Shown here one piece after another: positions 1 to 60,700 of a stretch of 64,000 nucleotides of DNA. Position numbers and translations under genes: made by a program. This DNA is from Amoebophrya sp. A120 (Eukaryota > Protista > Dinoflagellata). Numbering within the stretch: position 1 is the stretch's first letter; each line of letters begins with the position of its first letter. The notes beneath the pieces are model-generated. The model had not been told where the DNA came from and ran no database searches. It saw nothing but the letters and a program-made list of their open reading frames with translations. Location: contig CAJINV010000006.1 of NCBI GenBank assembly GCA_905178155.1, positions 2,458,658-2,522,657 on the forward strand. Direction: 5' to 3'.

Positions 1-1509
1 CCCCGCAGCCATTGCCCGCTGCCGCTGCAGCGCTGCGTAGTGCGGGCCCAGCCCCGCACGGGACAGCCGCTGCGCTTTTTCATATTGGCTCACGGCGTTC
101 CAGTTCCTGTCAAAGTCCCTGCCCCGTGGCATCCTCCCAAGGAAGTTCCATCGGAGGTCCTCGAGCTCTTCACGGAGGCGCGGGGAAATTCCGTTGCCAA
201 GGAGGTCATCTTCCCGCCTGTTGACAAAAAGATCGCGCACAAACGTAAGAAGAGGGGAGCCTAGGGAGTCTATTCCCCCTGCGGCTTGGGTTGTTCCAGC
301 AGGCTGCATACTGCTGGATGCAATCGCCCCACGAAGGCCGGCTCGGTGCTGGAATAATTCGAAAGCATCGGCGTCAGAATGGTAGGCCTGCCTGGAGTGC
401 CCCCCGGAATTCGAGTAGACGTTGATAGAAGTAGGCCCAACAGCGCTGGCGCCTTCCCAATTTCGGCGCCTTCGCTCCAGCTGCAAACCCAGAAGATCGT
501 CGACGGAGCTGCCGGCGGAGGCGTCGTCGTTTCTGCCGGGAGTAAAAAAGGCATTCCAAAGGTCCCTCTGGTAGGTCCGCTGCGGTGCTCTTGCCCGCGC
601 GGCCCGAAAGTCGGCTTCGCTCCTGCGACTAACATCGCGCGCAGTCGCAGCAGCTCTGGAGGAGTTCAGTACAGGTCGTGGGGCCGTGGAAAGAATCGGC
701 ATCGGCTTTCCGCGGATCCCGCGCGAGTCGCGGCAAATGGGGCAACTTCTCTGTGTAGCCAACCACCTGCTGACGCAGTCCCGGTGAAAGATATGCTCTT
801 GCGTGGCCGTCGCGTCCACCTCGTTTTGGTTCTGCGGGTCAACGTGCGTGATAAAGACGCTATCCTCCTCCTTCATCGGCTGAAGACAAATCGCGCACGG
901 CTTCTCGCGGTCAAAGTGGTCCTCGTCTCGGGGAAGGTGCTCCTTGGGCTTGGCGCTGGCACTGCGCCCGCGCCTAGTACGACCTCCACGAGATTCGTGC
1001 GACGTTGTACTAGACGCCACGACTGGGCGGGAAAAAATACTGGAGCGACTTCAATATCCTCAGCAAAGCCGTCCCCTCCTCATAGTTTTAAGATGGGAAA
1101 TGTGCGTAGACAAATCTACCAGCTTTGTTTGCTCCGCATGACAAGTTTATTGGCCTCGTAGTACAATCCTCGATTTCGCTAGTTCAACAGCATGACAGAT
1201 CTAGTCTATTATCCTGATCGGAGCTGCGTCACTAATTCCGAAACACGACTAGAAAACGCTTCTCATGGGGCTCCGTATGAGAAACGCAAACATTTTCATT
1301 TATAGATTTAAGCATGCAGATTTGCATGACAACCATGGGGCGTTTATGTACAACTGGAAGAGACCAAAATAAAGCACATGGCAATTATGGGGTGGGGACG
1401 TTTTCACATAGGATAGACTTGAGGACGAAGAAGGCGCTGTAAAGGCACCACGACAAGCGGTCGATCCTACAAGGAGCAAAGAGGCAATCACGCGCCGCGA
1501 CGCCAACAT
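1..1509 (-). CDS. Signal-peptide-bearing RING-H2-like protein (3' end runs off the window; exons 1509-~1417 and ~1050-<1)
   Basis: Manual translation, not in the ORF track: MLASRRVIASLLLVGSTACRGAF..., then, after removing element 1055-1415, an open frame to position 1 containing CAICLQPM...QEHIFHRDCVSRWLATQRSCPICR (897-733). Confidence 0.8.
1055..1415. mobile_element. Introner family C
   Basis: TATCCTCAGCAAAGCCGTCCCC...GGGGACGTTTTCACATAGGATA; flanks gacttcaa/gacttgag; removal restores the frame. Confidence 0.8.
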
Positions 1510-1761
1510 TTTTTTTGTTAATTTTTTTCTTCGCAACAAAAACAAATAGAAAGTGCGACGTCGCAGTGCCTTCCTGTTCCTGACAAAAAATAAACTTGAA
1601 AAAATATTAAAACGCAGCTAGAAACTGGAGCAAAACAATACAGAGCCACGTCTTACGGCTATTAGTATTTGGTGGACGTCGTCGGAGGGCAACGTAGAAG
1701 CGCGAGCACTAAGCTATGCCTGTGCAGTTACTTACGTGAATTTGAAGATGTAGCCTTCGGC

Positions 1762-1903
1762 TGTAGAAGTTGTCGTGGTTCGCAAATATGAATCAAAGTC
1801 GTTTCTACCGTGTAGTTCTTGAGTGCTGCAGTGTAGAAGTTGTCGTGGTTCGCAAATATGAATCAAAGTCGTTTCTACCGTGTGGTTCTTGAGTGCTGCA
1901 GTG
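1762..1903. repeat. 70-bp tandem duplication (2 copies)
   Basis: tgtagaagttgtcgtggttcgcaaatatgaatcaaagtcgtttctaccgtgt(a/g)gttcttgagtgctgcag at 1762 and 1832. Confidence 0.9.
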
Positions 1904-6900: not shown

Positions 6901-9495
6901 ACGTCTATCCGGACGGAATCGAAGGGAAAAGCCCGCATGCGATCGAGCTCCGCCCCGAGATTCACGCCCTCACTATCAAATGCAAAAATGTCTGGGTCTG
7001 GAAGAATGCAACTTGTAATGCGTATTTCAGCACACACAACAGTTTCTTATGCATACGTAGCAAAAGTTGCCCATTTTCTGTCAGCTAAATAGGGGACTTG
7101 TCATGCGGATTCGGCATTGCGGAAGCTTCTCGAAACCTGTGATGCTAGAGCTTCCATGCCAGACCTTCTGTGTCATGCAAAAACAGCATGACTCTTCCAG
7201 ACCCAGACATTTTTACATTTGATACTCACCGGAGAAAAACATTTTGCAGTCCATCCGCAGCTTGCCGTCCCTTCTGTCGTTGCTGTAGTGTCGCGGAACT
7301 TCCTGGTATTTTTCCGCTTTTTCCATGTTTACACCGTAACTCGCGATAATTTCCGGTCGCCAAATTTCCTCCGGGATTTTCTTCCCCTTGGGAAAGTCTT
7401 TCACACGACAGTTATCAAATGCAAAAATGTCTGGAAGATCAGAATAATGCACATTTTGCATGACCCATGATGGCTGTAATGCATGACCTAGCATCACAGA
7501 TTTTGACTTTGTGAGGCCCAGGGCTTCCTGATCATCTTCATCATGCCTATACCGCATGAGGAATACCCGCTCTGCGTAGCAAAAACTGGACTCCTCTTGC
7601 TGCTTACGCAATACAGTTTTTTTTAGGACCCAAAGACAGCATGACAAGTTGCATCCTTCCAGTGGTCCAGACAACATATTTGCATTGCATAGTAGTCAAA
7701 CCAGTGCAGCTCCAGATACGCTTCCATCTTGCAAAACTCGTGGTCGTATCCAATGCAAATATGTCTGGTGTTTTGTCTGGAGACAAGACCTTGGCACAGG
7801 ACAGTGATTTGTTTCTCCAGTTTTTGTTCCAAGCTCCACCAACCCAAGTAAGGAATGCAAGGCCTAGCGTCACAGGTTCTGCTTCTCCTTCTGCAGCCAT
7901 TTGGTCGTGGCGCCTATTCTGCATGGGAAATGCCCTCTGAGCATGGCCAGATGAAGTGGGCGCCTTTTCCTGCAGGTCATGCAACATCACAGATTTTTGG
8001 ATGATCCGCAACACGCATCACAGGTTCGAACCCTTCCAGACATCCAGCGATATTTGTTGCATTTGATACGTCATTGGACTTCGCGATCGACCACTCTTTT
8101 ACTCGGAAAACGCACTCGATTTCCGTCGGATACTTTTCCGACAGGTCTTCCGGGTTCAACAACGCAGGTCTGGTATCCTAAGCAAAAACGTCCCGACCCC
8201 GTAGTCAAGTTGGGAACTCTGCAACACAAATTCAGAAGTTTTACGAGCCACGCATCACAAGTTTTTCTCCGTATTGTAGTGCAGGTTAGTTGTAAGGGCG
8301 GCCACATCACAAGTCCATCTTCTTATCCTGTTTACAGCATCACAAATTCTGCAGCACGAGTAAAAATGCTCTCTTCATAGGGATGCGCATTTACAAATCT
8401 TTCTGTAACTGCAAATCTGCATGACAACTATCAAGTGTCGAGTAGGCCAATTTCCCAACGACCCTTCTGTGCTATGATTGCAATACAAGAAAAAAAAAAT
8501 GGCTGTCGAATCTGGAGCGAGTGCTGAATTGTCGCCCTGCATCGTGGCACGCCCACGGGTCATTAGAACTTCCACGGCTGCAGTGTAGAGCTCCTCGCTG
8601 TTCGCTGGATAAGCGGCTGCTCCAGTTGGGCCCCCTGGCACCCTAATCCTACTGCGGCCGCGCCCCCGCCTGCTGCGCGCAGTCAGGGTCGCAGAGAATC
8701 GGCTTAATGCCCACTCGTTGCTATGCGTACTATGCGTGCTATGCTTGCTATGTTTGCTGTGTCGGGGGTGCCACAGCACACATAGCACACAATTTTGGCC
8801 CGCGCACGGTGCTGTGCGTGCTATGCGTGCTGTGCGTGCTATGCGTGCTATCGTTGCTGTGGGCCGCTCGCTAATGCGACCACAGCAACGAGTGGCTCGG
8901 CCCTGCACCCCCCAGCAACGGCTCCAGGGAATGCCGCCGGAGCGCTGGGCCAAGTGCGAATGGTGTGGCGCGGGCCGCCGCAACGCGGCCGCCAACGGAA
9001 ATACCTAGCGCGCCTGCCTCAGGTGGTGGGCGGCTTTGCTTCTGGTTACCATCCGAATCGCCCGGCACAATCTGCGCCGGCTCTTTTTTCTTTTTGTGAA
9101 TGCGATCATAGTGATTTAGGGTCGTTGGGGATTGACCTACATAACAAGTGGGGACGTTTGTACAGAGGATATCTGGTCGTGAAGTCTATGGTATCGTACA
9201 TATCGTCCACACTGTGCTGGTAGGTGCTCGCCACGTCCGACAAGGCTGCTGCACTGGATAATTGCGGCTCGTTCTGAGCTGCTCCTCCTCCTCTTGGCGT
9301 TATTTGCTTCTCTTTCTCCAGCAAAAACTCTTCCCATTCCTTCGGCGGCACCCCGTTTTGGGGCGGCAATGGCTTCACGAGGCTCCAGTCGAAGCTGTTT
9401 TGCAGGCGGGAGGGGGTCGTCGCTTTTTCCAGGTCCTCCGGGGCAACGACGGCCGACAGAGACGCGGACAGGGAGTCTTGGGATTTCGAACGCAT
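3929..9495 (-). CDS. Pentameric ligand-gated ion channel (Cys-less, Pro-loop type), paralog 1; 14 exons, 13 introners
   Basis: Spliced product has WRPEI, RAFPFDSVRI, LKRTPGFYLQKGILPLYL (M1), GRLQMLFALFLTSFAIQWV (M2), LPRLPFNTVLD (M2-M3) and is colinear with paralog 2. Confidence 0.88.
3968..4250. mobile_element. Introner family H (degenerate)
   Basis: TATGAGAGCGC...GGGGAATTGTGCAC...CGTA; DR atgtc/tttcc degraded; removing element plus 5 nt gives FLGMGV as in the paralog. Confidence 0.75.
4279..4540. mobile_element. Introner family A
   Basis: TIR TATCAAATGCAAAAGTGTCTGGGTCTGG; DR cgtga/cgtga. Confidence 0.92.
4595..4763. mobile_element. Introner family B
   Basis: Ends ...CGATACTTTTGCACTGGATA; DR cggat/cgtat. 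Confidence 0.85.
4872..5136. mobile_element. Introner family A
   Basis: A-type TIRs; DR gcttc/gcttc. Confidence 0.88.
5184..5338. mobile_element. Introner family B
   Basis: B-type TIRs; DR cgcac/cgcag. Confidence 0.9.
5640..5789. mobile_element. Introner family B
   Basis: TATGAAATGCAAAAGCATCGTACT...GATACTTTTGCACAGGATA; DR accaa/accaa. Confidence 0.92.
5844..6153. mobile_element. Introner family E
   Basis: TATGGATGTGGCAGAATTGAAAT...ATTTCGATCCTGACACATCCATA; DR agagg/agagg. Confidence 0.9.
6228..6488. mobile_element. Introner family H (degenerate)
   Basis: H-like ends; DR tgaga/tcaaa; removal gives KPGLMF (paralog KPALMF). Confidence 0.78.
6666..6839. mobile_element. Introner family B
   Basis: B-type TIRs; DR ctaga/ctgga. 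Confidence 0.88.
6974..7224. mobile_element. Introner family A
   Basis: A TIRs; DR ctcac/ctcac; very similar to 46722-46973. Confidence 0.93.
7413..7691. mobile_element. Introner family A
   Basis: A TIRs; DR acagt/gtagt. Confidence 0.87.
7747..8068. mobile_element. Introner family A
   Basis: A-like TIRs; DR ggtcg/cgtca. Confidence 0.85.
8174..9171. mobile_element. Introner family C carrying a nested element
   Basis: TATCCTAAGCAAAAACGTCCCG...GGGGACGTTTGTACAGAGGATA; DR tctgg/tctgg. Confidence 0.88.
8442..9140. mobile_element. Nested non-autonomous TIR element (GTAGG...CCTAC, ~60-bp imperfect TIRs)
   Basis: gtaggccaatttcccaacgaccct...ctatgattgca versus tgcgatcatag...agggtcgttggggattgacctac; internal 9-bp gctatgcgt tandem repeats at ~8720-8850. 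Confidence 0.8.
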
Positions 9496-20919: not shown

Positions 20920-21231
20920 AATGTACTTTTTTTTTTTCCCTGTAGTGGTCGAAGAAGAAGATTATGCGTACTTACTATTCTTACTTCTATCAGCACCACA
21001 AGAACTGTATGTAATAGTTCTAGTTGTTTGTACTATGTTCTATGAGTCGTGAAAATTATGCGAACTGCAGAGCTTTTCCGTTGTTTCAAGTTCTTGTGCA
21101 CCATCCATTAGAAACGTCGATCTGAAGAACTACTACGCTCATCTCTTGCAAGCCTCATCTGATTGTAGTTCTTGCCGGGACAACACATTCGAACTCAACG
21201 CTCTTGCACGGGCAGACGCAGATGTCATCTC

Positions 21232-39829: not shown

Positions 39830-42805
39830 TCATTTCGGATGCGCCACGTGGATCCCGGCTTTACTGCAAACCAGTCTCTCTTGCTGATACAGCAACAGAT
39901 CCTTGATGCTCTTACTGGAATATCAAATGCAAAAATGTCTGGGTCTGGAAGAGTGTAAAATTGTCATGCAGGTTTTCTATGACCCAAGAGGTCTGGAATG
40001 CGGGACCTAGCATGACAGACTCTGTGAGGTCTCATCTGCCATACCTATCCTGCATGAGAAACTCCCTCCCAACGTGCTCGAAAGTGGACAGCTCTTGGCA
40101 CTCATGCAACACAGACTTTTGTAAGATTCAGATTTAGCATGACAAGTTGCACCCTCAACAGACCCAGACATTTTTGCATTTGATATGGAATTCGCGTTAT
40201 TTGAAACCAACGCCCGCACATCGCCCACCTGCAGCAGGGACTCGGGAAACACCGGATCGGGGTATTCCGGCGCGGAGCCCGGTCGGGGATTCTGCAACTT
40301 CCGGATCCTTGTCGCAAGCTGAGTTTCGGCATTCTGCGACTTCTGTTTGGAAGAAAGCAGGTTGCGTTTTTTCCTCTCCGTATGCTTTGGGGGTGCTGGG
40401 GGTGGGGGGGCCGCACTGACATCTGGCTGGCTCGACGCGTGGAGGCCGCCTGATATTAATCAAAAATTTAATATTACTTATTTGTTGATTTTTATTGCGG
40501 AGCTGCCAAAGAACCTGTACAGAACATGTGCAGTGAAGGAATTGCGCGCCGGTTTGTGAAAGAAACAACGGAACGCAAGAAAAGTTCAAGTTGACAACTG
40601 TTATTTTGAATCTGAATTACTTTTCCTCATCGCCATCGCTTTCAAGCTCCGTTCCCGCCAACGGTCCAATTGATTCCGTGCCGCGTCGTGTTTCTGCTTT
40701 AGACACTGCGCTATCAACTGCAAATATGTCGGGGTCTGGATCGACGCAGCGATAGCGAATTTGTGTAGCTGAGTGTTGCATAACATCAGGGCGATCTTCT
40801 GTATGGCATCCACGCATCACAAATTTGTTGTGTGGTTTTGCGCTTTATTCTACCGAACTTTGCATGACAAACTGAGTTTCACAGCATGACAAACAAACTG
40901 GTCCAGCGTATTTATGCATCACAAATCCTCGCTGTCCTTCAAATTTTGCATCACAAATCCAGAACCAGATCGATATTTGCAATGCATATGCGCGTTTCGG
41001 TTTTGCGCGGTTTCGATCTTGTCTTCGTAGTCCTGTTCCCGCTTCAACTGTATTCTGCGCAAAAGCATTGCGCTCGTACGTGCAATTGCAAGTATGCATG
41101 ACAGATCTGATTTCCGTATACTGATTTAGCATTACAGATTCCATTTCTCATGCTGCGCAAATTTGTTATGCAATTCTTGCATACTACTTAGTACGATGGT
41201 TTTGCGATGAATAAACTGCATCTCCTCCCTTTGTTGCCGCAGTTTAGTCATTTGGTCCCGGGCTTTTTGCTTGCGCGCTTCCAGACGGGCGGCGGTCTGA
41301 TGGTAGTTGGGTAGAGGATGCGTAAGCAGTTGGAGTTGCCGCGCACTTGTATAAAATCAAAGTCAAATTTGTCCTTTCTCATGCTGTAGTCCTCTTTTAA
41401 ATCTTCACGTGCAGTGCTTTTTGCCGAAATGAAAATCTGCATGCCTTCTGGAAAAAATCGAGAGTGTTGATCGAAAAATGAATACCGCTAAGACGTCTTC
41501 TTGCGTCACCCTGGTCAATTGGTCCATCAATCTTTGCTTCTTCTCGTGTTTTTCCGCGAGTTTCTTCTCTAATTCGATGTTATCCAATTCGACCCGCATT
41601 TCCAGTTCGGTAAAACTCAAAACCTTCGGCTTGTGCTTCAGTTTGGCCTCACGCTCCGGGGTGGAGAGGTGCTTCAGCAATGGTGGGTGGTACTCCTTCA
41701 GATGCGCATCCATGTCGATATGGATTGCAACTATGTCTGGGTCTCGAAGATTGCAACTTGTCATGCTAAATCCGAATCATGCAAAAATCTGTGTTGCATG
41801 AGTACCAAAAGCTGTCCACGTTCGATCAACTTGGGGGGGAGTTTCTCATGCAGGGTAGGCATGGAAGAGACCTCGCAGAGTCTGTCACGCTAGGTCCCGC
41901 ATTCCAGACCTCAGGGGTCATGGAAGCCCTGCATGACAAGTTTACAGTCTTTCAGAGGACCCAGACATATTTATTGCAGTGGATAGTCGATCGGCTTCCG
42001 CAAGATCCCCAGGTGATTGCGCATCCCCTCCCTTTCCTCACGTTTCGACTGCGACACCATGGCGTGAATTTTCTTGGGGGAGGGGGACCCGTCTTGTTTA
42101 AACAGCTCCGCTTCTTTCTCCTTTTCCGACGTAGGCGAAGATTTCTTTTTCTTATTTCGCCTGTCTATCGGTTGTTGTTCCGATGTTGACGTAGCTTCTT
42201 GTTGTGCAGTTGTTGTAGTAGTTTTCGACGACGCAATAACTTGATTCGTCCGCTTACTATTTTCCTGTTGTTTTTTCAAGTTCGCCTCATGTTCTTCTTC
42301 CCCGATCTCAATCAGCCAGTCAACAAACTCCAAACAATCTTCCTTCTCCTCCTGTCGATCTTCCGGAAAGTACTCGAAAAACAAATTCTTCCCCTCGGTG
42401 GGACAGTGGTCGAGTTGGATCCGCACCAGCCGCTGTAGCTCCTTGGCGTCCAGGTTCGCCGCGCACTGCAGGAAAAACGCCTCCTTTCCCCTCGTCTTGT
42501 ATTCCCGCAGGACGTAGCAGCACTCCAAAAAACGCTTCCGGAGGTAGACGTGCTCATTCCGGTTGATGTGCTGCGGGGGTGGTTGGAAAATTGGCGGGGC
42601 GGTGGAGGAGGAGGATTTGTGCTGTGGAAGATGATATCCGGTGCAAAAGTATCGCACTTGTCGTTGCCAATTGCAGTCATGTATTACAAATCTTTTTATT
42701 AAAGGTAAATCCGCATTACAAATCCCATTTTTCATGCTGAGCAACTTTGTCATGCGATTTCTACTAGTAGGATACTTTTGCAATGCATAGATGAGATGCG
42801 CTCAT
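39830..42805 (-). CDS. Hypothetical coiled-coil protein; 5 introners plus 2 GT-AG introns (40450-40620, 41297-41485)
   Basis: MSASHLPQHK...; continuous frame after splicing (DVLA|TAARLEARKQKARDQMTKLRQQREEMQLKRE) to TGA at 39830. Confidence 0.7.
39921..40185. mobile_element. Introner family A
   Basis: DR tggaa/tggaa. Confidence 0.92.
40712..40988. mobile_element. Introner family A
   Basis: DR tgcgc/tgcgc. Confidence 0.88.
41051..41213. mobile_element. Introner family B
   Basis: DR aactg/aactg. Confidence 0.87.
41719..41985. mobile_element. Introner family A
   Basis: DR gtcga/gtcga. Confidence 0.9.
42635..42789. mobile_element. Introner family B
   Basis: DR gatga/gatga. Confidence 0.92.
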
Positions 42806-43788: not shown

Positions 43789-46700
43789 TTACCCCGCCGC
43801 CGCCGCTTCTGCTGCCGCGAGCAAGGCTGCGTCATCGAGTTCTTCTTCTGGTGCGTCGGCGAAGTCTTCGTACAGGCGAATTTGCGGATGGAGTAACAAC
43901 TGATGCACCCGTTGCATTTTCTGGTGGATTATGAACCGCAAAAGCATCGTACTAGAATTGCATCACAAATTTGTTTAGCATGAGAAATGGAATTTGTAAT
44001 GCGGATTTGCGACAAGAGAGAGATTTGTAATGCATGATTGCAATTACTACGAGTACGATACTTTTGCAGTTCATATGGATCTCGTCCAGCGTGATTTTCG
44101 ACCTCGCATCCACGGCTTTGTCCCGCTGCGCCATATGCATTGCAAATATGTCTGGGTCTGTAACGCTGCAACCTGTAATGCTAATTCTGGATCGTGCAAA
44201 AATCTGTGTTGCATGAATGCCAAAAGTTGGCCACTTTTGACCAAGTTGAGGGGAAGTTTCTCATGCAGAATGGCCATGATGAGGATCTCACAAAATCTCT
44301 CATGCTGGGTCCTGCATTCCAGACGACAAGGGTTGTGGAAAATCTGCATGACAAGTTTCGGAATCTTCCAGACCCAGACATATTTGCATTTGATACGCCA
44401 TCAGGTCCTGCGAAATCGAATGCACGTGCTTCTGCATGTCCTCGATAGAAACCGGGACCGGCGCTTTTTCCCCGTACCCCTCTCGCGTCAAGGAAGAAGT
44501 CGTGTGGGGCTTCGGCTGCTTCCGCCAGCTGATTCCTTGCTCATACGCAATGAATTCGCCCCGGTCAACACACCGCTCGCCGCGCTTCAACACGTAGTCG
44601 TCAAGTTGAGTGATGATCGTGTCCCACGTGTCCGGATCGTGGATTTCCGGCGCTTTGATACAGTCGTACGCGTTTGCAAACTGCATATGCATTGCAAAAG
44701 TATCGCACTCGTATAACTATAAATGCGAGACCCCCATGACAAATGTGATTTCTTTAAGTAATTCAGCATGACAAGTTCCATTTTTCCTTCCAAAAAAATT
44801 TGTGATGCAATTCATACTTGTGCGATGCTTTTGCAATGCATACTGCAGCTGCGCGAGCGAATGGCTGTTCATCACGGTACAGGAGTAGAGGAGTCTCAAG
44901 ACGGAATCGGGCTCCAACCTGGACTCATTTGCGATCAGCACTTTCAAGTATTTATGCTGCTCGACAAGTTGGCAGAGGGCGTCAACGGGGATACCGGGGA
45001 GCAGGTCGTGAAAGCGGTCGTATTCTGTTTTTTAGTATTATATGGCTTTGAAGCTCTGATGCTCATATCGTTCGACTGTACGAAGAAAACGCATGTACTA
45101 CGAAGCGCCGCGGGCGCGGGTCTGTCGTTTAAAAAAATTTGCATGACAAACAATAAAATCGAAATAAATCCTGCATGACAAACACCGTATCTGTACCTCC
45201 CTGCTCCCGGTTCAGTAACCCGTTCATTTTCTTCTTCGCCACATGCTCTGCCACCGTCGCGTACGCCTTTCTTGCGTGTTTCAGCTTTCTATCTTCTTCC
45301 GTTTCCTCCTCGAAGCTCGAGGGCTGGGGCGGCGTGCTTTGCGGTTGATTTGCCGTGCCCGGGCGGCTATCAAATGCAAATATGTCTGGGTCTGGAAAAG
45401 TGGAACCTGTATTGCGTGGCTTGGATTCGTGTAAAATCTGTATTGCAAGACGAGGCAAAGGAGCCTTCTTTTGTCATGCAAAAGCGCAGTTTCTCATGCG
45501 CAATACGCATGAGAAAGTGTCCGAAAAATTTGTCATGCTTGGTCGCACTCAGGAGTATGCTCAATCATCGCCATCCAGCATCACAAGTTTCCAGACCCAG
45601 ACATTTTTGCAGGTGATAGCGGCTGTTGTCGGTCTGCGTTTCTAGTTCGTATTTCATCCCGTTTTCCCGAATCTCTATGGCGTTCTCAAACGTTACATTC
45701 TCAGCTGTTACATGATTTGTCATGCAAAATCACAATTAGAATTGATACGATCAAGCTGCTTCGCATGACAAATTCTCGAAGAGCCAAACAGGCTGAAAAT
45801 CTGCGCCAACTCTGTCATGCGAGACGCGCAAGGACACCCCTTTGACATTTGCCATTCTTGCATCACAAATTCATTGTAACAGTTGAGAATGTAACAGTTG
45901 AGAACGCCAACATAATCTCCTTCAACCTTTTGTGCCCCTCCCGCACGATCCCGGTGACGTCTAACACCATCAGGTTTGGCGAGAAAAAAGTTGGTCACAG
46001 TCACTAGCTTGCCCTTGCAGGTTTTGCATCACAAATTTTTTTGGCATCACAGCTTTCCTCTGCATTGCAGAAACACTGGGGAAATCCCTACGGAAGTTTG
46101 GCAGCTGTGATGCATTTTCACGCATGACAGAAAGTTTTGTATTGCAAAAATGCGAATGAGTGATCGTGACGAACTTTTCTTGTTTGATATCAGGTTTGGG
46201 CACTTCAGTAAAATCACGCGCAAAATGTTCGTGTCCACATCCGCACAGTAGTTCAAATATCGCAAGAAAAAACTTTTTCACTGTGAACTTGTGATGCAGA
46301 AAATGGAACCCAGAACTGCCTGTCTTGCTACAGCTACAAGACATTGGATTTTCAAGCGTGTTTTCCCTTGGGAAGCCCGCACGACAGATTTTCAGTGTCA
46401 TGTGTATAAACAAACTTGTGATGCAGATCTTGCAAAATCACCACAGTGAAACAGTTTTTTCGTGGGATATCAAGCCGAGATACCGCAACCGCGTCCCGAA
46501 ATTCGCGAACAGCGCCGCCGTATGCAGTGCAAAAGCATCGTACTAGTATAAATTTAAATTGCATTACAAATTAGCCCAGCATTACAAATTGAATTTGTAA
46601 TGCTGATTTACCTTGAGAAAGAGATTTGTAATGCATACACACAATTACTACGAGTACGATACTTTTGCACGGGATACGCCGTCAAGAAAAAACTGGACCC

Positions 46701-49700
46701 GTAGACGAAATTCAAGGGGTGTATCAAATGCAAATATGTCCGGGTCTGGAAGAATACAAACTTGTGATGCGCATTTCAGAACACAGAAAAATCTCTCATG
46801 CATAGGCAGCAAAAGCTGCCCACTTTCTGTCACCAAAATGGGGGATTTGTCATGCGGGTTCGGCATTGCGGAAGCTTCTCGAAACCTGTGACGCTAGAGC
46901 TTCCATGCCAGACCTTCTGTGTCATGCAAAAACAGCATGACTCTTCCAGACCCAGACACTTTTGCATTTGATAGGGTGAAACCGGACGCAAAACGGAAAC
47001 GCGGTCAGGATGAGCTGGGATTCTTGGATTTTCGTGTTAAAGTGGAGGGAAAGCTGCAGGTTCCAGTAGCCTTCCTTGACTTGATTGTAGGCAAACTTTT
47101 CCTCCTCGGTCTCATACCGGGGGCGCTCTATCCAAAGGAAAAACATTGCGTGCGCACGACTTTGGACTTCCTGCAAGGCATGCCCAGCATGACAGGTGAG
47201 TACTGCCTTGCATGTCCCGCATGACAGACACAGTGTTTTTCTTGCATACCTTCGTTCAAAATTTCGTTCAGCTGCTGCAATTCCGATTCCAGTTTTTCCT
47301 TCTCGGATTGCGCGTTAGAACCTGATTGATGTTATTGACACTGTGCTTGTCATACGAAAATCCCACACTAATTTCTTTTCTCATGCTTGTTACCGAAACA
47401 AAACAGCGAGATATGGATTTTGGTATTGGTTTTCTTCACTCACAACAGCTATACCTGCATCCTGGTCGCTGTCTTCTAACTCCCCTGGATTTATCTTCTC
47501 CCCCCGCGCTTCTATCCTGAGTAAAAACGTACCCACACCAGAGTTGTAATGCAGATTTGCAAAGACAGGAAGACTTGTAATGCGCATCCGCATGAGAGCC
47601 ATTTCCAGTCGTGTTTTGGAATTTGTGATGCTGTGAACAGGATGAGCAGATGAATCTGTGATGCGGCTGCCCTTGCTAACTTGCACTACGCTGCGGAGTG
47701 CAACTTGTCATGCGTGACTCACAAAACTCCTAGGTTTGTGTTGCAAAATCCCCATCCTGACGCTGGTGCGGGTACGTTTTTACTCAGGATAGCTTCTATT
47801 CTTTCCTCTTCCTGCGATTCCTTCTTCTCAACCGTCTTTACAACGGGGAGTTCTTCCTGGACCACTTCATTCTTGAAATCCCAGCGGTAGATGTGTATGC
47901 AACGAAAAACTGTTTCACTGTGAACTTGTGATGCATAGAATGGAACACAGAACTATTTGGCTTGCCACACCTGCAAGGCATTGGAATTTTTAGCGTGTTT
48001 TCCCTTGGGAAGCGCGCATGACAAATTTTCTGTGTCATGTGTAGCAAACTTGTAATGCGGATCTTGCAAAACCATCACACTGAAACAGTTTTTTCCCTGG
48101 ATAATGTGCGGCTGCAGTGCGTTGTTCATTTCCGCCAGGAGCGCGAGCATCTCCTCCGTGGGCGGCCTATTACAGTAAAAAATGCCCCCGCCCCAGAACT
48201 TGGCAGCATTTGTATTGCAAACCTTTCCAATGGAAAGAACCTTCCCCGTCTTGCATGTATCAGCATCACAAATTTCAATTTTCCATGCTAAATATCTCAA
48301 ATTTGTGTTGCAAAGGACCGCAACAGTAGCCGGGTCTGTTATGCACAAGACACCTTGCGCGCCTAGATTCTGCATCAGCAAGGCTCGTAGTCCTTTCATG
48401 CAAGACAAAAAGGTCTCATACTCATTTGGAAACTTTGCATGAGAAACTTTTGCAAATTCTTTCCGGGGTGGGGGCATTTTCATTGTAATACGGCCCGTCG
48501 TACGTTTCGTCGCGATCTAGGTCGAACATTTCTTTATCCTTTAAGTCCAAAATTTTCTTGTTGTAATCCTGCCTTGTCTTGTCTATCCGGGCCCGCTCCT
48601 CCTTGGGCAAGTAGTTGTCCAAAATCTGCCCCGTTTCTTCATTTACTTCGTACAATTTTCCGTCGATCTTCACGTACTTCTTTGGTCGCGGCTCGTCGTA
48701 GAAAAAGAGGCTGTACTTTGGACACCTGTGCGGAATAGAGTGGATGTAGTCGGTTTCGTAGAAGGTCGCCAAGTGCTTCGCGTCAAAGTCCCCCGGCACG
48801 TCTAAATCCAGCGTTTTTCCGTTGATCGGCAGCCAACAAAAGTCCTTGATGTTGGGGTTTTGCAACTCGTAGTCGTCCTCGGCCGTTTTATCGTCGGATA
48901 TCCCGAGGAAAAACCTCCCCACGCACCAAGGTTGTTGTATATGCAAATCTGCATGCTGAAAATGTTTCTCATGCGAAGGGCCCCATGACAGCCATTTCGC
49001 AATGCTATTTGGGAGTTTGTCAACATGCTGGAATCAGCATAAGGTAGTCAATTTGGCATGCGGCTGCACTAGCTAAACAGGATTAATACATTACGAGCCC
49101 AGACTTGTCATGCTCGACAGCCAAAACTTGGAGATTTGTGTTGCAGATTTGCCAACTTGTTGACTAAACGGTCGTGGGAACCGATTTTTACTCCGGATAT
49201 CGGATCTCGCGTCTTCATCCTCCCAGTGCGGGCATTTCACATTCACGTATCAAAATGAAAAATCCCCTCTCCCCATATCACATTGGAAGTCTGTGATGCA
49301 GATTTGTGGTCACAAATCAGCTTTGTCATGCCAGAAGGGAAAAGATGCGGACTGTACTGCTGGGCTGCGTGGGAAAGCCTTGCATCTTCAGCATGACAGG
49401 AGAAAGCTGGAAGAGGGGAACAGCATGACAAATTGCCTGCAAGCGAGGCCACAACTGCGTCTCTTTGCCTTCCAGCAATACAAGTCGATTTGTGTACTCA
49501 AATACAGCATGACAAGTTTCGTTTTCGATATGGGGAGGGGGGATTTTTCCTCATGATATCACGATCTCGCTGTCCACCCAGGATTTCAGGTTGCACGGTA
49601 CTGGTTCGGTGAAAATGTTGTAGCCTGACTGGAGTAACGCGTTTTCTGTCATGTTGTAGAGTTCCACATCTATCCTTTTAAACTCGCGAAACTCTCGGTA

Positions 49701-52700
49701 TTCGAATCGCGGGAACGTATCCAGTGCAAAAGCATCGTGCTCGTAGTAATTGCAATTATGCATTACAAGTATTTTTCTTTTCCCTAAGGTCGATCAGCAT
49801 TACAAGTTCCATTTGTTCTCATGCTGAGGAAATTTGTAATGCAATTCATACTAGTACGATGCTTTTGCAATGCATAAAACGGGATTTTTTGCAACTCGAG
49901 AACGTCCCGCACGTCGTATCTCGCTAGTTGTGTATCAAGTGCAAACATGTCTGGGTCTGGAAGATTGCGAGATTTTTTGTCATGCATATTTCGGATCACG
50001 CGAATGGCGTCTGATGCAGGCAAAAGCATCACAGGTCGAGCGCGCCGCATGATGCCTGTGGTCCCGCATGAGAAATAACTTCCTACTTGCGTACCAAGAA
50101 ATCGGCAGCTTTTAGCGCTCACGCAACACAAATTCAAATTATTGTGTGTTCCTCCAGAGTTTGCATCACAAGTTCCAAGTCTTCCAGAGGACCCACACGT
50201 ATTTGCAGTTGATATTGTGTGAGTTTTGACAATTTCGCGAAGTACTTGCAGAGTTCGTCCAGCTGCTTATCGCTGTCGGAAACGGAAACTAAGGCGTCCG
50301 GGAGAAGCAACTCTATGAACAGCAAAAGCATCGTACTCGTATAAATGCATTACAAATTTCCTCAGCATGAGAAATAAAATTTGTAATGCTGGTTGACCTT
50401 AAGAAAAGGATTTGTAATGCATGATTGCAATACGAGTACGATACTTTTGCACAGGATAGACTCGGGGCGGTCCTTAATCTCCAGCGTACCATACTTCTCG
50501 TTCACCTGTACGACATTCAGCTTCGCCGCGCCGCCTATCCTGAGCAAAAACGTCCCCACCCAAGAGTCAGGATGAGAAAACTGCTAGACAAATCAACAAG
50601 CTTTGGTCGTTGCGCATGACAAGTTCTTTGGGCTCATAGTGTAATCCTGTTCGGCTAGTGCATCAGCATCACAAGTCTCACATCCTATGCTGATTTGAGC
50701 ATCACAAATTCCAAAACGCGACTACTAGAAAATGCTTCTCATGGAGCTCCGCATGAGAAACATTTTATGCATGCTGATGCGCATGACAAGAACTCTGGGG
50801 AATTTGGGGACGTTTTTACAGAGCGTACCGCCACCCGCGTTATTTTTGAACTCCGCCTTTTGTCTTTCCGCTTCTTCCTGCCGCAGCTCTATCCGTCGTG
50901 TTGGTGACACCATGCGCGGTTTCAGAGCGCCTTTGCGTAACCGAATGTCGTTTTCGGACAGGTGCTTCATTTTTTCGTTATTTACCCCAAAGTACTTCCT
51001 CTCCAAATCCTTCGCCATGCGGTCGGCTATGGGGTTCTCAAACGTTACATTCTCAACCGTTACAGCACGAATCTGTGGTGCAAGAACAGTAAAAGTGAGA
51101 ACGGGCGGATTGCGCATTTTGCATTACAAATTTGGAACGTAGTACTCATCATGCTGCGTCGCCCTTGGGCGGTTTGTCATGCGGAGTACCTTGATCGCCT
51201 GGAGGCTGATGGCAATTTTGCATTACACGTTCATGTAACACTGCAGAATGTAACAGTTGAGAACGCCATATCGGCCTTCGACACGTTGTGTCTGCGGTTC
51301 AGCTATCAACTCCAAAAATGTCTGGGTCTGGAAGATGGCCAGGTTTGTCATGCATATTTTGAATGACCCATGATGTCTATGACGCATGCCCTGGCATCAC
51401 AGATCTTTAGAGGACTTTGCGATGCCTCTACCGCATGAGAAATGCCCTCTCCGCATAGCACAAACTGGAGTCCTCTTGCTGGTCATGATGCAATACAAAT
51501 TTTTTTAGAATCCAGAGACAGCATTACAAGTTTAGAATCTTCCAGACCCAGACATATTTGCAATCCATATCAGCGGCGATTGCGAGTGGTCTTCGTCTTC
51601 GAGTTCCTCCAAGTTTTCAAACTCTACCTTCTTCTGGCCGTCCTTGTTCATGCCCAGCGGTAGCGTAAGACCGCCTGTTCCGTGACTCTGTGTACTACTT
51701 TTGTTCCCACCCTGCATGGCAGCAAGACCGCCTTTTTTCCCTGTCGCTTTGTCCTCTTTCTTTTCCCGCTTCACGATAAGGGACACAAATGCCCCAAACT
51801 TCGCCTTGTTCGACGGCGGCGCGCCCTGCCGGATTTTCGTTTTTTCCAAAGCGTCCTTGTCAATCACGAACCACTTATCGTGAGAAAAAAGTGTTTCACT
51901 GTAAGGCTTTTGCAGGTTTTGCATCACAAGTTTGTTCTACATGACAGACACAGACAGAAAAAATTTGCCATGCAAGGTTCCTAAAGGAAAACACAGCTAA
52001 AAATCCACTGTCTTGCATGTCACAAGACAAATAGTTCTGTGTTCAATTTTATGCATCACAAGTTTACAGTGAAACAGTTTTTTCTTGCGATACGACTTTT
52101 CGAAAATGTACTGCGCATGGGTGATGGGGGTCACGGTCAGTTGCAGCGGAAGGAGCAGTATGCTGTGCAAAAGTATCGCACTCGTAGTAATCGCAATTAT
52201 GCATGACAAGTTGCCTTCCTAAGCTAAAACAGCATGACACATTCCATTTGTCATGCTAGGAATAAATTTGTAATGCAATTTATACTACAAGTACGATACT
52301 TTTGCATTTCATAAGCAGGTCGTCCATGAGTAGCTTCACGAGTAATTCGAGTTGGCAAATCGCGTCAATCTGCTGTTTTATGTGGATGAAGTTTTTGTTT
52401 TTCTTTTTCTTCACGAGACCCGTTTGCGAGTCGATGGACGCGTTGTGGTTTGCCACGTACTTCATATTGCTGGGCAGCTGGAATTTCCCCTCCGCAAACA
52501 GGCGGATCGAGCGGTGGATCATTCCGTTCACAATGTTTTTCCACCGCCAATCGTTCGCCAACTCGTCCAGACACCGTCGCACGATATGGGAGTGTCAGGA
52601 TTGAAATCGTCAAAGTTGAAATAATACTTTCTCATGCATAAAATCGATACAAGTTGGAAGCCCAATTTCCAAGCGGCGCATGACAAATTTCGGCACCGTC

Positions 52701-54139
52701 TAGATCCAGTTTGTCATGCTGTTTAGGGACAGAAGGCGTTTTTTGTCATGCTACTTTAGCAGCTCTACCGCAGACCCCAAACAGGCTGACTGTCGGCCTC
52801 AATTGCAATCCCTGCAAGAGAGGCACTTCATGCCTTGCAATTTATGCATGAGAAATTATCTCAACTTTGTCGATTTCAAACCTGACACTTCCATACACGA
52901 CCTGGCGAAAGTAGGAAACCTCCTGATCGTCGTGTATCTGCTCGGAGTCTAGTCGCATGAAGTTGTCCTTGGCCACCGAGATCGACCCATCCCGCCGCAA
53001 CGAAAACCGGTCCACGATCATGCGCTGCACGGCTATAAACAGCCACCACCGCATATGGAGGATTTTCGACGTGTCCTGCTTGTCGTAAGCGAGGAACGCG
53101 TTCCGCGCCCGAGTCTCGCACTTGTAGATGATGGGCATGTAGTGCTCGAGTTTGGTCACCTTCATGGCGTGCTTGCGGAATAACTCTACCGAGGTGCGAC
53201 AATCCTTGGAAATGTTGTACTGAAACGACTTCCGGTACGTGTCCAGGTCCACGCCGGCCTGCATGGCCTTGTAGTTATCGGAATTTTTGTTCAGATTTTC
53301 CTCGCCGGGTAGTCCGGTGACCAAAGCGCCAGAGGTCTGCGCGCCGGAATCGCCCCCAGCGCCGTCGCCGGTGGCTCCGGTCGCTTCGCCACCCCCACTC
53401 CCCCCGCCAGCTCCTCCGGTGTTTCCAGTGTTTCCCCCGCCGCCCGGCGACCCGTCGGGCTTGCCGCCATCAGCTCCTTGCTGCTGCTGCCCGGATGAGG
53501 AAGGTATGCTTTGCAAAACTATCGCACTCGTAGTACTTGTTGCAAACATCCATGACGAATCTTCCTCCTAAGGTAAAACAGCATTACAAATTGCCTTTTT
53601 CTTCTTGAAAAAATTTGTGATGCAATTTTTGCTAATACGATACATTTGCAATGCATAGAGGAAGTGTAGACCCAATACCGGTCTAACACAAACCCCAGCT
53701 GCTCCACCGCCTCGGGCCCGTTGCAGAAGTTGTAGGGATTGCGCTTCGTGTCCCCCGGGAGGTAGGGGTCTTCCATCAGAAACACGCCGGCCTGCACGCA
53801 TATCCAGTGCAAATATGCCTGGGTCTGAAAAGTTGTGATGCTAATACATGAAGAGTCACAACATGACTAGAGTAGGCAGCCAAGCATGAGAAATCTTTGA
53901 GCACTCCTGTGGTGCGTAATACGCATGAGAAGCTGCGTTCTTTTTGCATGACACAGAACCAGCACTACTCCGCAACACGCATTACAGCATTTGGGAGCAT
54001 TGGAATTCAGCATTACAGGTCAGGCACTCTTCCAGACCCAGACATATTTGCAGTTCATAACGCATAGTGGGTGGCGGCTGCAGAGCCGGGAGAAGGCGTT
54101 CACCCGGAGCTTCGCTTTCGGGTCCTCGGGGAGGGCCAT
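43789..54139 (-). CDS. Large protein with a cysteine-containing leucine-rich-repeat-like segment; 25 introners plus 3 GT-AG introns
   Basis: Spliced segment ...TRLRYLGLNYCADVDTNILRVILLKCPNLMVLDVTG... (LRR_CC-like); the exons I translated join from MALPEDPKAK (54139) to TAA at 43789; start uncertain. Confidence 0.72.
43930..44075. mobile_element. Introner family B
   Basis: DR tggat/tggat. Confidence 0.92.
44134..44395. mobile_element. Introner family A
   Basis: DR cgcca/cgcca. Confidence 0.92.
44686..44842. mobile_element. Introner family B
   Basis: DR ctgca/ctgca. Confidence 0.92.
45025..45196 (-). other. Canonical GT-AG intron carrying a GCATGACAAA pair
   Basis: GAG|GTACAG...AAACAG|AA gives EQGEYDRFH; motifs at 45141 and 45173. 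Confidence 0.75.
45368..45618. mobile_element. Introner family A
   Basis: DR gcggc/gcggc. Confidence 0.92.
45676..45914. mobile_element. Introner family D
   Basis: DR atctc/atctc. Confidence 0.92.
45975..46189. mobile_element. Introner family M (single copy)
   Basis: GAGAAAAAAGTTGGTCAC...GTGACGAACTTTTCTTGTTTGATA; DR tcagg, extending to 11-bp atcaggtttgg. Confidence 0.82.
46258..46469. mobile_element. Introner family G
   Basis: TATCGCAAGAAAAAACTTTTTCACTGTG...CACAGTGAAACAGTTTTTTCGTGGGATA; DR tcaaa/tcaag. Confidence 0.9.
46521..46676. mobile_element. Introner family B
   Basis: DR cgccg/cgccg. Confidence 0.92.
46722..46973. mobile_element. Introner family A
   Basis: DR gggtg/gggtg. Confidence 0.93.
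47167..47249 (-). other. 83-nt GT-AG intron that is a shrunken L/G-family introner
   Basis: G|TATGCAAGAAAAACACTGTGT...CTTGCAG-GAAG; DR gaagg/gaagt. Confidence 0.72.
47322..47454 (-). other. Canonical GT-AG intron
   Basis: CAG|GTATAG...ATCAG|G gives DAGSNAQSEK. Confidence 0.68.
47513..47791. mobile_element. Introner family C
   Basis: TATCCTGAGTAAAAACGTACCC...GGGTACGTTTTTACTCAGGATA; DR gcttc/gcttc. Confidence 0.93.
47896..48103. mobile_element. Introner family G
   Basis: DR atgtg/atgtg. Confidence 0.92.
48168..48490. mobile_element. Introner family F
   Basis: DR cggcc/cggcc. Confidence 0.92.
48899..49199. mobile_element. Introner family C (degenerate)
   Basis: DR tcgga/tcgga. Confidence 0.87.
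49248..49558. mobile_element. Introner family J
   Basis: TATCAAAATGAAAAATCCCCTCTCCCCATATC...GATATGGGGAGGGGGGATTTTTCCTCATGATA; DR tcacg/tcacg. Confidence 0.92.
49718..49876. mobile_element. Introner family B
   Basis: DR gaacg/aaacg. Confidence 0.9.
49933..50214. mobile_element. Introner family A
   Basis: DR ttgtg/ttgtg. Confidence 0.9.
50314..50458. mobile_element. Introner family B
   Basis: DR aactc/gactc. Confidence 0.9.
50536..50827. mobile_element. Introner family C
   Basis: DR ccgcc/ccgcc. Confidence 0.9.
51028..51270. mobile_element. Introner family D
   Basis: DR tcggc/tcggc. Confidence 0.92.
51304..51569. mobile_element. Introner family A
   Basis: DR tcagc/tcagc. Confidence 0.92.
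51876..52092. mobile_element. Introner family G (opposite orientation to 47896)
   Basis: DR ccact/cgact. Confidence 0.9.
52159..52313. mobile_element. Introner family B
   Basis: DR agcag/agcag. Confidence 0.92.
52585..52895. mobile_element. Introner family E
   Basis: TATGGGAGTGTCAGGATTGAAATCG...CGATTTCAAACCTGACACTTCCATA; DR cacga/cacga. Confidence 0.93.
53505..53657. mobile_element. Introner family B
   Basis: B TIRs; flanks gaggaagg/gaggaagt (8-bp-like repeat). Confidence 0.87.
53801..54059. mobile_element. Introner family A
   Basis: DR acgca/acgca. Confidence 0.9.
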
Positions 54140-57360: not shown

Positions 57361-57733
57361 CTTTGCGGAGAAATGCGGTCTTAGAAGTGCGGCAGCCGGA
57401 CGTGGTCGTTGGGACTCGCCCTGCTGAGAGGTGAACTTCGCCGCTTACGTGACGTCCGGGAGAAGCTGCGCCGTCATTTTTGCGACGCCGGCGACGTCGT
57501 GCCGAAAGTAACCTTATACTTTTCAGTGTTTATTGCTTTCGCCTGCTGCGAAACCAAAAAGTTCAGAGATCGTGTTATGCAAACGTCCAATACAACTCGG
57601 TGCCAAAAATCATTGCTCCCTCTTGGTCTTCGTGCAACTGCAAATCAGCGATCGTAGTATTCCTTGCCTCTCAGAGCAGTGCTGCCCGTTACTTCGCTCT
57701 CTGAGGACTAGTAGGTAAAAATCACGATAGCGT

Positions 57734-60700
57734 TCAAGAACTTCTCATTTGGGCTGCGAACACTAGCAGTAGTACAACCAAAGTATTGCAGAACAAATAA
57801 ATGCCACACATCAAATATCCTCCTACCCACCCCGGCCCGCTGTGGTGATCATTATCACCAACACCATCTTCAAAACACATCATTTCCGTTCGCGCAATCT
57901 GCTTCAATGTGCGAAGTAGAGTGTCAAAAATTTCCTTCACTACCGCAACTGACTCCAGGGGATGGAGTTCTTCTTGGGTGCTGGACGACGACGGCGTTGC
58001 ACTAGCTCTAGGCTGTTCCTGTTCCTCCCCGCCCTCGAAAGGATTTTCATCCAGCAGTCCAATTGTTTTGCCTAGCCGGATCTTGTTCACCACCTGCACG
58101 TGGACGAGTTGCGGCACCTTTATATCTGCAGTCGTTCTGGTATGATCAGTGCCACATATATTTTCGACCTCCCCAGCGGCCCCATCGCAGCCGTTTTTAC
58201 CACCCCGCGGCCCACTCACAGCAGCTAAAACCACGTAGGGCGTAAGCCAGGTTGGCAGCAGTTTTCTCTCCTCTTCTGTCTTGCAGCACACCAACTGCCT
58301 CATCGCGCGCTTCACTTCCCTCGGCGGCTCCTGAGGTAGAAGTAGATGAGGCCGCTGCTCTAGTACTCTTGATGCTCTATTTCTTGTTCTTACAGTGGCA
58401 TCAAATGTAGTAGAAGTAGCGGTACAAGTAGAACTGCTGGCGCGATAATTCGGCCGCTTGTCATGTCCCCGATTCATCTCCGAACGAGCCTCGGATTGTG
58501 AGGCAGAAACTACTGGAAGGTCTATCCGAAACAGGTTCCAGCAGAAGTGCTCCAGGACGGAAAAAAGCATCTTTTCCACAAGCTGCATCGCGGTCGTCCT
58601 ACCACTGCTGCTGGTCTCGGTCTTGTTGGAAGAAATAGCAGAAGATGCTACCATCGGTAATTGCTGGAGAAAGAAAATCTCCAGAAACAGGCCGCCTGGA
58701 ATTATTCCGGGCAGTTTATAATTCCGTGCTCTTCGAGCATCGTCGGCCGCGATGCTCTGCTGGTCCTTTCCTTCTTTCTTCTCAACATTGGCGTCTTCGT
58801 CTTTGACCTCTTCTTGCACCGAGCAAGTGGTCCTCGCACCTGCTAAATAAATTTCCAGCAGCTTCTTCACAAGACGCACGACCGGCTCTCGCGCTTCAGC
58901 CGTCGGCCCGGAGACAAGCAGGTACGTCGGAAAGGAGGATAAGGGGCGACCGCTGCCTGGTGGTACTAGTGACGCTGCTGGTCCTATTGTTCTAGTAACT
59001 TGAAGCTCTTCATCACCCACGATCTTCACTTCATCCTCCAAAGCAAAGTAATTGTGTCCGACCTTCCTCATCTTCCGGAAGAACAGGGTATTGCTTCGCA
59101 TCTTTTCCGCACTTGAAAAAAGCGACACCGGCTCAATTCGCTCCAGCAGTGGCGCCAGTTCTTGCAGGTGGTATTGGTCACCCCTGCTGTTTTCCTTGTT
59201 CACGGTGAAAACGAGCGCCGAAGATATGGATTGTAAAAATGTCTGGGTCTGGAAGAATGCAAGTTTGTCATGCTTGTCTCGCATGACTCTTAAATTTGTC
59301 ATGCACATTACCCAAGACCCCCACTTTTCTGTCATGCAGAAACGCAGTTTGTCATGCAGAATAGGCAACACCAAGAAGCTCAGAAACTTGTCATGCTGAG
59401 CCAGCACTTGTAGCCTCCTCATGATACGCCACCCAGCATTACAAGTTTCCAGACCCAGACATTTTTGCATTTGATAGAAGAAGTTCTTGTACTATAATTT
59501 TCAACACCCGGCGCAGAAGAGGTGGTGCAAGAAGATCTACTTCCAGTGCGCAAGGCCGCCAGCAGCAGTTCCAGGCTGTCCAATTTGTGAATGGTTTCGA
59601 AATCGGTTTTCCTACTTCTGGGAGAACATGAGCGCTTAGAAGTCCCCTTTTCCACGCTGACGTTCTTGGCTTGATTTAGACGGGTCGGCGAATCATCTCT
59701 CGCATTGGCATTCTCGTCCTCCTCCTCCTCATTTGTCAATACGAGCAGCACCCGTTGAATCCTCGAAGTTCTGGCTTTGTTCATCTTGTTTCCGTAGTTG
59801 CTTGATATCGTCCACCCACCTAATGCTGTGTTCGTACTTGTTGTCGCTGCTGCTGCGCCTCCGCTAGTAGTTGTAGGTGTAGCAACATTATCAAATGTAA
59901 AAATGTCTGGGTCTGGAAGAAATCATGCTTGTCATGCTTGTCTGGCATGACTCTTAAATCTGTCACGCACGTTACCCAAGAGCTCCGGTTCTCTGTGATG
60001 CAGAAGCGCAGTTTGTCATGCAGAATAGGCAACACCTAGGAGCTCAGAAACTTGTCATGCTGAGCCAGCATTTGTAGCCTCATCATGAGACGCCACCCAG
60101 CATCACAAGTTTCCAGACCCAGACATTTTTACATTTGATAAACATTAGCGGTTGTAGAAAACAGCAGCTCTGCCGTTTGCTGCTTCACCCAGGCCGTTGC
60201 GTAGGCCTCGAAGAAATCCAAGTTCCAACAGTTTCCGTTGAGAGTTGTACTGCTAGTACCGGGACGAGGTACACGTTCCTTTCCAGTGGTTTCGAAGGTT
60301 CTTTCCTCACAAGAAGTTCTTTGCAGACAAAAGTCCTGAAAAACGTCCTGCAAATCGTGCAGGGTAAGTACCTGCACCGCGAAAAGTAGAGGCTCGTGGT
60401 CATGGTCGTGCTCGCAAGCAGTTTCGTTTCTCGACAGGCTTCTTGTTCTAGAGGCACAAGTCGTTCTTGTACCTGGCGCTTGGAATAAAAGATCCTCTCC
60501 TCCAAGCCGGCAGTGTCCGTAAAAAATGACTCCGTTTTTCACTAAACTTGTGATGCGGGTGGACAATAGCAGGGAACTGGCAGAACTAGAACTCTTCACA
60601 CCAACAACAAACTCGGACAATTTCTTCATCTTCTTTATTCCGAGCTGCTGCTGCGTAGGCATAGAAGCAAGACGACCCTGGGGAGCAGGAGGAGCTGCGG

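Follow-up and report, generated by a model that had tools for sequence, protein, structure and literature searches.

The question raised by this locus is how the approximately 30,000 introners of Amoebophrya sp. A120 spread and are recognised, and it is addressed here through a site shared by all sampled families. The stretch analysed comprised 64,000 nt of the 115.5-Mb genome (C6:2458658-2522657, referred to below as the window). An initial annotation of the window had proposed that introner families with different terminal repeats are filled with one internal code, present in both orientations and often paired 31-33 bp apart. Dozens of otherwise unrelated transposon-derived introns carry one 13-base site repeated about 32 bases apart.

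The internal site and its carriers

The window was scanned for exact matches to GCATNACAA/TTGTNATGC. 196 sites were found between positions 1136 and 62491, 90 on the + strand and 106 on the - strand, compared with 2.86 ± 1.67 (maximum 7) in 100 dinucleotide shuffles. Allowing one mismatch gave 439 matches where about 49 were expected. The 13-mer GCATGACAAATTT was then counted genome-wide, a scan that the initial annotation had proposed, yielding 3389 forward and 3358 reverse matches (about 6,700 copies) and 0/0 in the reversed control. An apparent strand bias of the 13-mer along contig 1 was rejected as a listing artefact, the minus copies lying in the same stretches and the two genome totals being as given. 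The extended site is GCAT[G/C/T]ACAA[A/G]TT[T/C], with a central base order of G > C > T and A at about 1%. Beyond these 13 bp the flanks carried approximately 0 bits of information in a sequence logo to which each family contributed one representative.

An element was called where the tips read TAT/ATA, 13 or more of 20 terminal bases were complementary and the duplication matched at 4 or more of 5 bases. This yielded 58 elements in the window; with 200 kb of contig 1 added, the total was 172, compared with 2 in reversed-sequence controls. Target site duplications (TSDs) of the 58 window elements were exact over 5 bp in 48 and matched at 4 of 5 bases in 10. The terminal inverted repeats begin with TAT, and after about 7 variable bases comes an A-run. 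Clustering with BLAST produced 12 multi-copy families and 18 singletons. 139 exact sites lay inside the 58 called elements. Sites outside them were placed by alignment to called elements, a relaxed caller being too noisy, and 44 more were found in stretches that aligned across the site. At least 183 of the 196 exact sites were thus placed in elements, leaving 13. With one mismatch allowed, elements contained 4-8 copies, in both orientations inside the ends.

Removal from RNA was assessed over positions 46200-52190 using Logan contigs of two runs tagged ‘RNA?’ and presumed to be RNA, in which about 30% of the words of this stretch were present. Each run contained one minus-strand contig, about 3.9 kb long, that skips at least 15 segments. 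For called elements, each skip consisted of the element plus one copy of the duplication, at non-GT-AG boundaries. All exact sites in the 6 kb fell within skipped segments and none in exons. Over the 6 kb covered by these presumed transcript contigs, the elements are precisely removed as introns.

Conservation of the site

After masking of the sites and removal of 30 nt at either end, interiors were compared in all pairs of 25 families (300). Any match was obtained in only 2 of the 300 pairs, both marginal, and each of the top cross-family 6-, 7- and 8-mers was contained in the site or in one of the variants GCAACACAA and GCATGAGAA. The internal site is the sole sequence common to the families. 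Together with the enrichment, this comparison bears out the proposal of a single code common to families with different terminal repeats, and the 90/106 strand split agrees with its strand independence. The positions cited in the initial annotation were all correct within 1 nt, but about half of the cited partners were one-mismatch copies (CTGTNATGC, TTGTGTTGC, GCATGACAG), and the partner at 59961 differs at two positions.

The 8 fixed columns of the site were conserved like the terminal repeats, and above the remaining interior, in 12 of 12 multi-copy families. Motif windows ranked in the top 10% of their own family's interior 9-mer windows in 24 of 32 cases (p = 5e-18). For variants shared by at least two copies, the rate per cell was 0.098 over the fixed columns, compared with 0.206 for the interior and 0.34 for the central base; in most families it was near zero over the fixed columns. 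Private variants in the three largest families were equally frequent in fixed columns (41/2804) and interior (204/13847). Equal private variation of motif and spacer fits constraint on the source lineages with neutral decay after insertion; young copies and redundant sites make this test weak. Since the interiors are unalignable while the fixed bases persist around a freely varying central base, the motif is no neutral relic; families whose interiors align and decay neutrally, the outcome that would have spoken against the initial proposal, were not found.

Spacing and polarity of paired sites

In the raw histogram of the window, 13 same-orientation pairs were spaced 31-32 bp, 11 convergent pairs 34 bp and 13 same-orientation pairs 84-85 bp. 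For dereplication, the 172 elements were reduced to 25 family representatives and one mismatch was allowed. 19 same-orientation pairs at 31-33 bp remained, in 13 families, compared with 2.95 ± 1.65 for permuted positions (maximum 11 in 5000 runs), confirming the recurrence noted initially. Harmonics were seen near 63-65 and 93-97 bp. When 8 families found only in a related organism (described below) were added, spacings of 31, 32 and 33 bp were present in 5, 12 and 4 families, respectively, and the convergent 34-bp spacing in 8. Spacers between paired sites showed no relatedness across families, the spacing being kept nonetheless. Genome-wide, exact same-orientation pairs with gaps of 10-40 nt numbered 16,145, compared with 1 in the reversed control. 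Among the first 100 of these matches listed, 62 were spaced 31-33 bp; minor peaks at 39, 48-49 and 20 bp in the same 100 each traced to one abundant family. A step of about 32 bp corresponds to approximately three helical turns, which would place the sites on the same face of the helix.

Pairs were also polar. A weak 5′ member and an exact 3′ member were combined 34 times in the window and the reverse 7 times, and 9 versus 0 times in family representatives. The 5′ member usually had one mismatch and often ended in G, and the 3′ member was exact and followed by RTT. Pairs were directed at the nearer tip in 14 cases versus 4, and single sites in 58 versus 36. At 46 of 62 ends, the distance between the tip and the outermost site was 30-54 nt. 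The smallest element observed, of 111 bp (L040:354-464), consists of two terminal repeats around one 32-bp pair.

Phased pairs were also found in GT..AG introns. The intron at 47320-47452 (133 nt, - strand; joint 47319>47453, CT..AC on the + strand) contains the one-mismatch sites TTGTCATAC and TTCTCATGC, 31 bp apart. A putative GT-AG intron, recognised from the letters only, lies at 45026-45194 on the - strand, has two exact sites with a spacing of 32 bp (45141 and 45173) and aligns to none of the called elements. Neither intron has recognisable terminal repeats, and both may be decayed introners that took on canonical splice sites.

Reading on DNA or RNA

The site strands were balanced, though most long open reading frames (ORFs) of the window are on the minus strand. 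Copies of each family were present in both orientations within the gene block, and the phased pairs of the window divided 44/30 by strand, with no significant bias. In several families every copy of the site has one orientation. Family C (F2) is one of these. Its element at 47513-47791 (279 bp, TSD GCTTC) has sites at 47544, 47575, 47623, 47656, 47705 and 47736, of which 47656 and 47736 carry one mismatch, and is skipped at joint 47507>47792 (284 = 279 + 5). A copy in the opposite orientation at 50535-50827 has sites at 50614, 50666, 50699 and 50781, all on the + strand, and is missing (joint 50530>50828) from the same transcript contig. Because a one-orientation family is removed both ways, neither a single-stranded RNA signal nor pairing of opposed copies can be required.

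Pairing of opposed copies in the pre-mRNA, which the initial annotation had also suggested, found no support as a general role. Central bases of opposed copies were complementary in 8 of 48 cases, compared with 19 expected, and no covariation at this base was found. In the outer pairs of family A (F0) the figure was 5 of 39 versus 16 expected, and family B was at chance. Family A is represented by a 252-bp element at 59889-60140 with perfect 31-nt terminal repeats, TSD AACAT, sites at 59929 (-), 60013 (-), 60052 (-) and 60100 (+), and additional one-mismatch copies; its outer two sites were 96% conserved over 59 copies. Family B (F1) is represented by a 145-bp element at 50314-50458 with sites at 50347 (+), 50381 (-) and 50412 (-); the first two converge at a spacing of 34 bp, and the last two form a direct pair with a spacing of 31 bp. 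This element is absent from the transcript contig (joint 50309>50460). In a predicted RNA fold the convergent pair of family B forms a perfect 12-13-bp hairpin, and the predicted fold of family C contained no site-to-site pairing. A branch-point or PUF-like single-stranded reading was rejected as a general role, family C being spliced both ways and strand bias being absent. As a general role, reading of the site on DNA rather than RNA best fits these results.

Candidate reader of the site

The initial annotation had regarded the motif as a binding array for a double-stranded DNA (dsDNA)-binding protein, and of the readings considered this one fits best the shared code, its strand independence, the phase of about 32 bp and the conservation. 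With moderate confidence, we favour the view that the sites form a subterminal array bound by one dsDNA-binding protein acting in trans, which would most likely be a transposase. In this scheme GCATNACAARTTY would be a protein-binding site on double-stranded DNA, arrayed in introner transposons resembling MITEs (miniature transposable elements with inverted repeats). A strong site would lie about 30-54 bp inside each tip, its RTT end mostly toward that tip, and weaker copies would follow inward at steps of about 32 bp on the same helix face. Either the transposase encoded by an autonomous partner or a DNA-binding subunit of that enzyme would bind the strong site, spread cooperatively onto the weak sites and pair both ends so that cutting takes place at the TAT tips. 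This would free the long family-specific terminal repeats for another purpose, forming an RNA hairpin that joins the exon ends.

The presence of one 13-bp site in all sampled families would imply that the whole introner population has one reader, acting in trans. Two layers are thereby separated, the variable terminal stems specific to each family and an invariant internal code common to all. The 45-bp weak-N23-strong unit provides a concrete bait for the reader protein and for its spacing rules.

Several results weigh against a transposase array. Within 200 kb of contig 1 and six further loci, no autonomous element was encountered that combines these ends with these sites. A six-frame search of the genome gave no match to the Pfam domains for hAT dimerisation (PF05699), hAT RNase-H-like (PF14372) or RAG1 (PF12940), although such searches are weak on genes split into short exons and absence of hAT or RAG1 proteins is not demonstrated by them. 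No transposase was reported in A120 (Farhat et al., 2021; PMC7789003). Orientation toward the tip is a tendency only, family B and the look-alike family F11 being reversed, and the distance of the outermost site from the tip is spread over 30-54 bp. The two GT-AG introns hold a phased pair. The private-variant test, of low power, shows no constraint on the terminal repeats either and leaves room for a host-level role.

A 5-bp duplication would suit an integrase-like enzyme, which is a lead only. The integrase core domain rve gave 30 matches in the genome. At six rve loci, chosen apart from four equal-scoring copies, no sites were present in 3 kb around the domain. Each of the four equal-scoring matches lies in a 1986-aa open frame (C2:4744953, C8:3697995, C18:1075347, C1:15601383), and together they resemble a multi-copy element that was active recently; the open frames around other rve matches reach 4886 aa. 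Two long TAT...ATA pairs were found in a 150-kb sample, and the second was rejected as a false pairing across a gene. The first, a 4.5-kb element at C1:1316869-1321413 (L002:6869 to L003:1413), has ends of the TATCAAAAGCAAAAATCCCC type (family F6), matching at 22 of 24 positions, and TSD CACAA. Its interior of about 4.2 kb is unrelated to the short copies and contains four ORFs of 134-282 aa without a Pfam match. An introner family of A120 with terminal inverted repeats and integrase-like ORFs was described by Gozashti (2025).

Alternative readings

A motif left over by chance or slow decay in families that descend from one element would have no function. TAT tips, the 5-bp duplication and the A-run of the terminal repeats are common to all families, which makes common ancestry of the group likely, and families B and F11 have one layout. 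Neutral decay is nevertheless expected to erase short motifs and blur their spacing, whereas the 8 bases are kept beside a free central base in unalignable interiors, the motif windows are among the most conserved of each family (p = 5e-18) and the 31-33 bp spacing persists without conservation of spacer sequence. Already contradicted by conservation and spacing, a functionless relic is effectively excluded. An RNA-level role would have opposed copies fold the intron, or one orientation read single-stranded, for example as a UNAC resembling a branch point and lying some 30-50 nt before the 3′ end, or as the site of an RNA-binding protein. The predicted 12-13-bp hairpin of family B is consistent with this, as are the phased pair in the two GT-AG introns, the confinement of sites to removed parts throughout the RNA-checked 6 kb, and the commonest layout, in which the 3′-proximal copy, whichever way the element is inserted, reads GCAUNACAA at a distance of 30-50 nt from the 3′ end. 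Set against these points, family C is removed in both orientations, with one RNA lacking GCAUNACAA and neither containing opposed copies; opposed copies lack complementarity at their central bases; the sites favour neither strand with respect to the gene block; and phased pairs share one orientation and so cannot pair with each other. We therefore consider an RNA-level role unlikely.

The remaining alternatives share DNA reading with the favoured transposase array. Another DNA-level role for the element, such as an accessory or architectural protein, or repair or replication in transposition, would show the same conservation and phasing and would suit a tip orientation that is only a tendency, but nothing specific speaks for it and it differs from the favoured reading only in the protein bound; it is regarded as fairly unlikely. 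Quite improbable, in our estimate, is a host factor, that is, a cellular or domesticated protein that marks the element on DNA; such a mark, equally improbable, might guide co-transcriptional removal, set chromatin state or silencing, or lead to excision at the DNA level. Apparently strand-independent reading on DNA would suit it, as would a code common to all families and to a relative about 13% diverged, the presence of the pair in two GT-AG introns without recognisable terminal repeats, and transposase searches that have so far been empty. It is opposed by the private variants of the large families, which are equal in site and spacer and so reveal no constraint after insertion (low power), and by the arrangement of site orientation and strength around the element tips, as for end recognition. 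We know of no precedent for such a host factor, which also counts against it. In one version, the array would have ceased to be a transposition signal, or to be that alone, and would be a DNA address label, read by a host protein or a domesticated transposon protein, that tells the cell what to remove; this we think improbable. The label could act co-transcriptionally, guiding non-canonical, U1-less excision of tens of thousands of introners in any orientation, for which the chances seem similarly slim. An alternative of equally low probability is removal at the DNA level, by analogy with the internal eliminated sequences (IESs) of ciliates. Were the array such a label, the pair in the two GT-AG introns and its retention in the diverged relative would reflect host use.

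Related organism

Metagenomes were scanned for two extended sites 31-33 bp apart, giving 17 matches. 13 were contigs of JACKZZ01. The other four were rejected, three being unrelated satellites and one (L039) looking like a chance match. JACKZZ01 contained the same families, with 202 exact sites in 67 kb (3.0 per kb) and the same spacing peak. Unique DNA of one JACKZZ01 contig was 86-87% identical to A120 (L038:1-3400 versus C2:1018962-1022701), which identifies JACKZZ01 as a distinct organism; at one point of this match the A120 genome has about 310 extra bases, an introner-sized difference. Some introner copies were 96-97% identical between the two (e.g. L038:8023-8331 versus C13:777281-777589). 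Such copies in an 86-87% background would reflect either slow evolution of source elements or recent activity or transfer. The JACKZZ01 loci had no overlap with the sampled A120 sequence in which orthologous insertions could be compared. In a protein search with one ORF of the window, only a protein of Amoebophrya sp. A25 (31% identity, the best relative) and one ENA fragment were obtained.

Comparison with known systems

Repeated subterminal motifs of known transposons include AAACGG in Ac and GTGGC repeats in Hermes (both hAT), and the 12-bp TnpA motif of En/Spm (CACTA). Binding of transposase to such motifs is established for MITEs and hAT elements (PMC1636448, PMC3143072). Like the arrays of Ac, Hermes, En/Spm and Lemi1/Emigrant (PMC1636448), the site is a short motif repeated both ways, tens to hundreds of bp inside the ends. 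Subterminal transposase-binding arrays are likewise kept in non-autonomous derivatives and conserved above surrounding DNA. Unlike them, the array described here is known from sequence, spans at least 30 families with different terminal repeats and is carried by introns that are removed from RNA. Its spacing of about 32 bp and its weak/strong polarity are much stricter than those known for the other systems. Elements of the hAT superfamily also differ in having an 8-bp duplication rather than 5 bp, and their domains PF05699 and PF14372 were without match in a search that is weak on intron-split genes.

The ends of Sleeping Beauty-type Tc1 elements, with inverted and direct repeats (PMC5224488), resemble the present ends in having more than one site per end and outer and inner sites of different strengths, with ordered assembly in that system. 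Sleeping Beauty has two 32-bp sites about 165 bp apart in long terminal repeats and a TA target, whereas the sites described here measure 13 bp, have a period of 32 bp and are also present in the element centre, and the duplication is 5 bp. Transib/RAG signals share the 5-bp duplication and a terminal motif with a second motif at a fixed distance. They differ from the introners in that the tips here are TAT instead of CAC, the sites are multiple and periodic, and PF12940 has no match in the genome.

The carriers correspond to the introner elements of Amoebophrya (Farhat et al., 2021; PMC7789003), with the same TAT-start repeats, about 7 variable bases and A-run, direct repeats (3-5 bp there, 5 bp here), non-canonical boundaries and precise removal from RNA. 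That study described terminal and direct repeats only, found no family-specific inverted-repeat motif and none common to the families, and stated transposase-mediated mobilisation as ruled out for A120. Introners of Amoebophrya sp. A25 have TTA-type ends. No description of the internal site or its phasing was found in the text and supplement of Farhat et al. (2021), in Gozashti (2022), in Gozashti (2025) or by full-text string search. Subterminal binding repeats are of a known kind; their use across at least 30 introner families and the strict 32-bp grammar appear undescribed.

Further elements and features of the window

An element at 40712-40988 (+ strand) has five sites in the same orientation (40814, 40862, 40884, 40916, 40948), at steps of 48, 22, 32 and 32 bp, with mutually unrelated spacers. 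An F5 family element with TATGGGAGTGTCAGG ends at 52585-52895 has sites at 52678 (+), 52711 (-) and 52743 (-), the direct pair being 32 bp apart. The 125-nt TAT...ATA intron at 47124-47248 (- strand) has two one-mismatch sites, both GCATGACAG, 32 bp apart. It contains CAG|GTGAGT; among the joints listed, the transcript contigs skip the whole 125 nt (47123>47249).

At the tips of called elements in the window, TAT and TGCAAAA were constant and positions 4-7 free (CAAA, GCAT, GGAT, GAAA, CCTG), varying even between both ends of one element. The terminal form TATGCATTGCAA is one mismatch away from the internal site. Two ends of family C type, joined by the caller as a 998-bp ‘element’ (8174-9171), enclose a tandem repeat at 8718-8861 with a 9-bp unit (GTGCTATGC and variants); this ‘element’ is probably two elements flanking an exon.

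An assembly gap at 35956-35975, outside the motif system, is flanked by a palindromic inverted repeat of G and C runs at 35925-36010 (CCGGCGGATAAGCCGGGGGGGGGCCCC and its mirror image), which probably caused the assembly to break. The nearest sites, with one mismatch allowed, are at 35807 and 36235, at least 149 nt away. No called element or measured spacing spans the gap, so that its continuity is immaterial to the finding.

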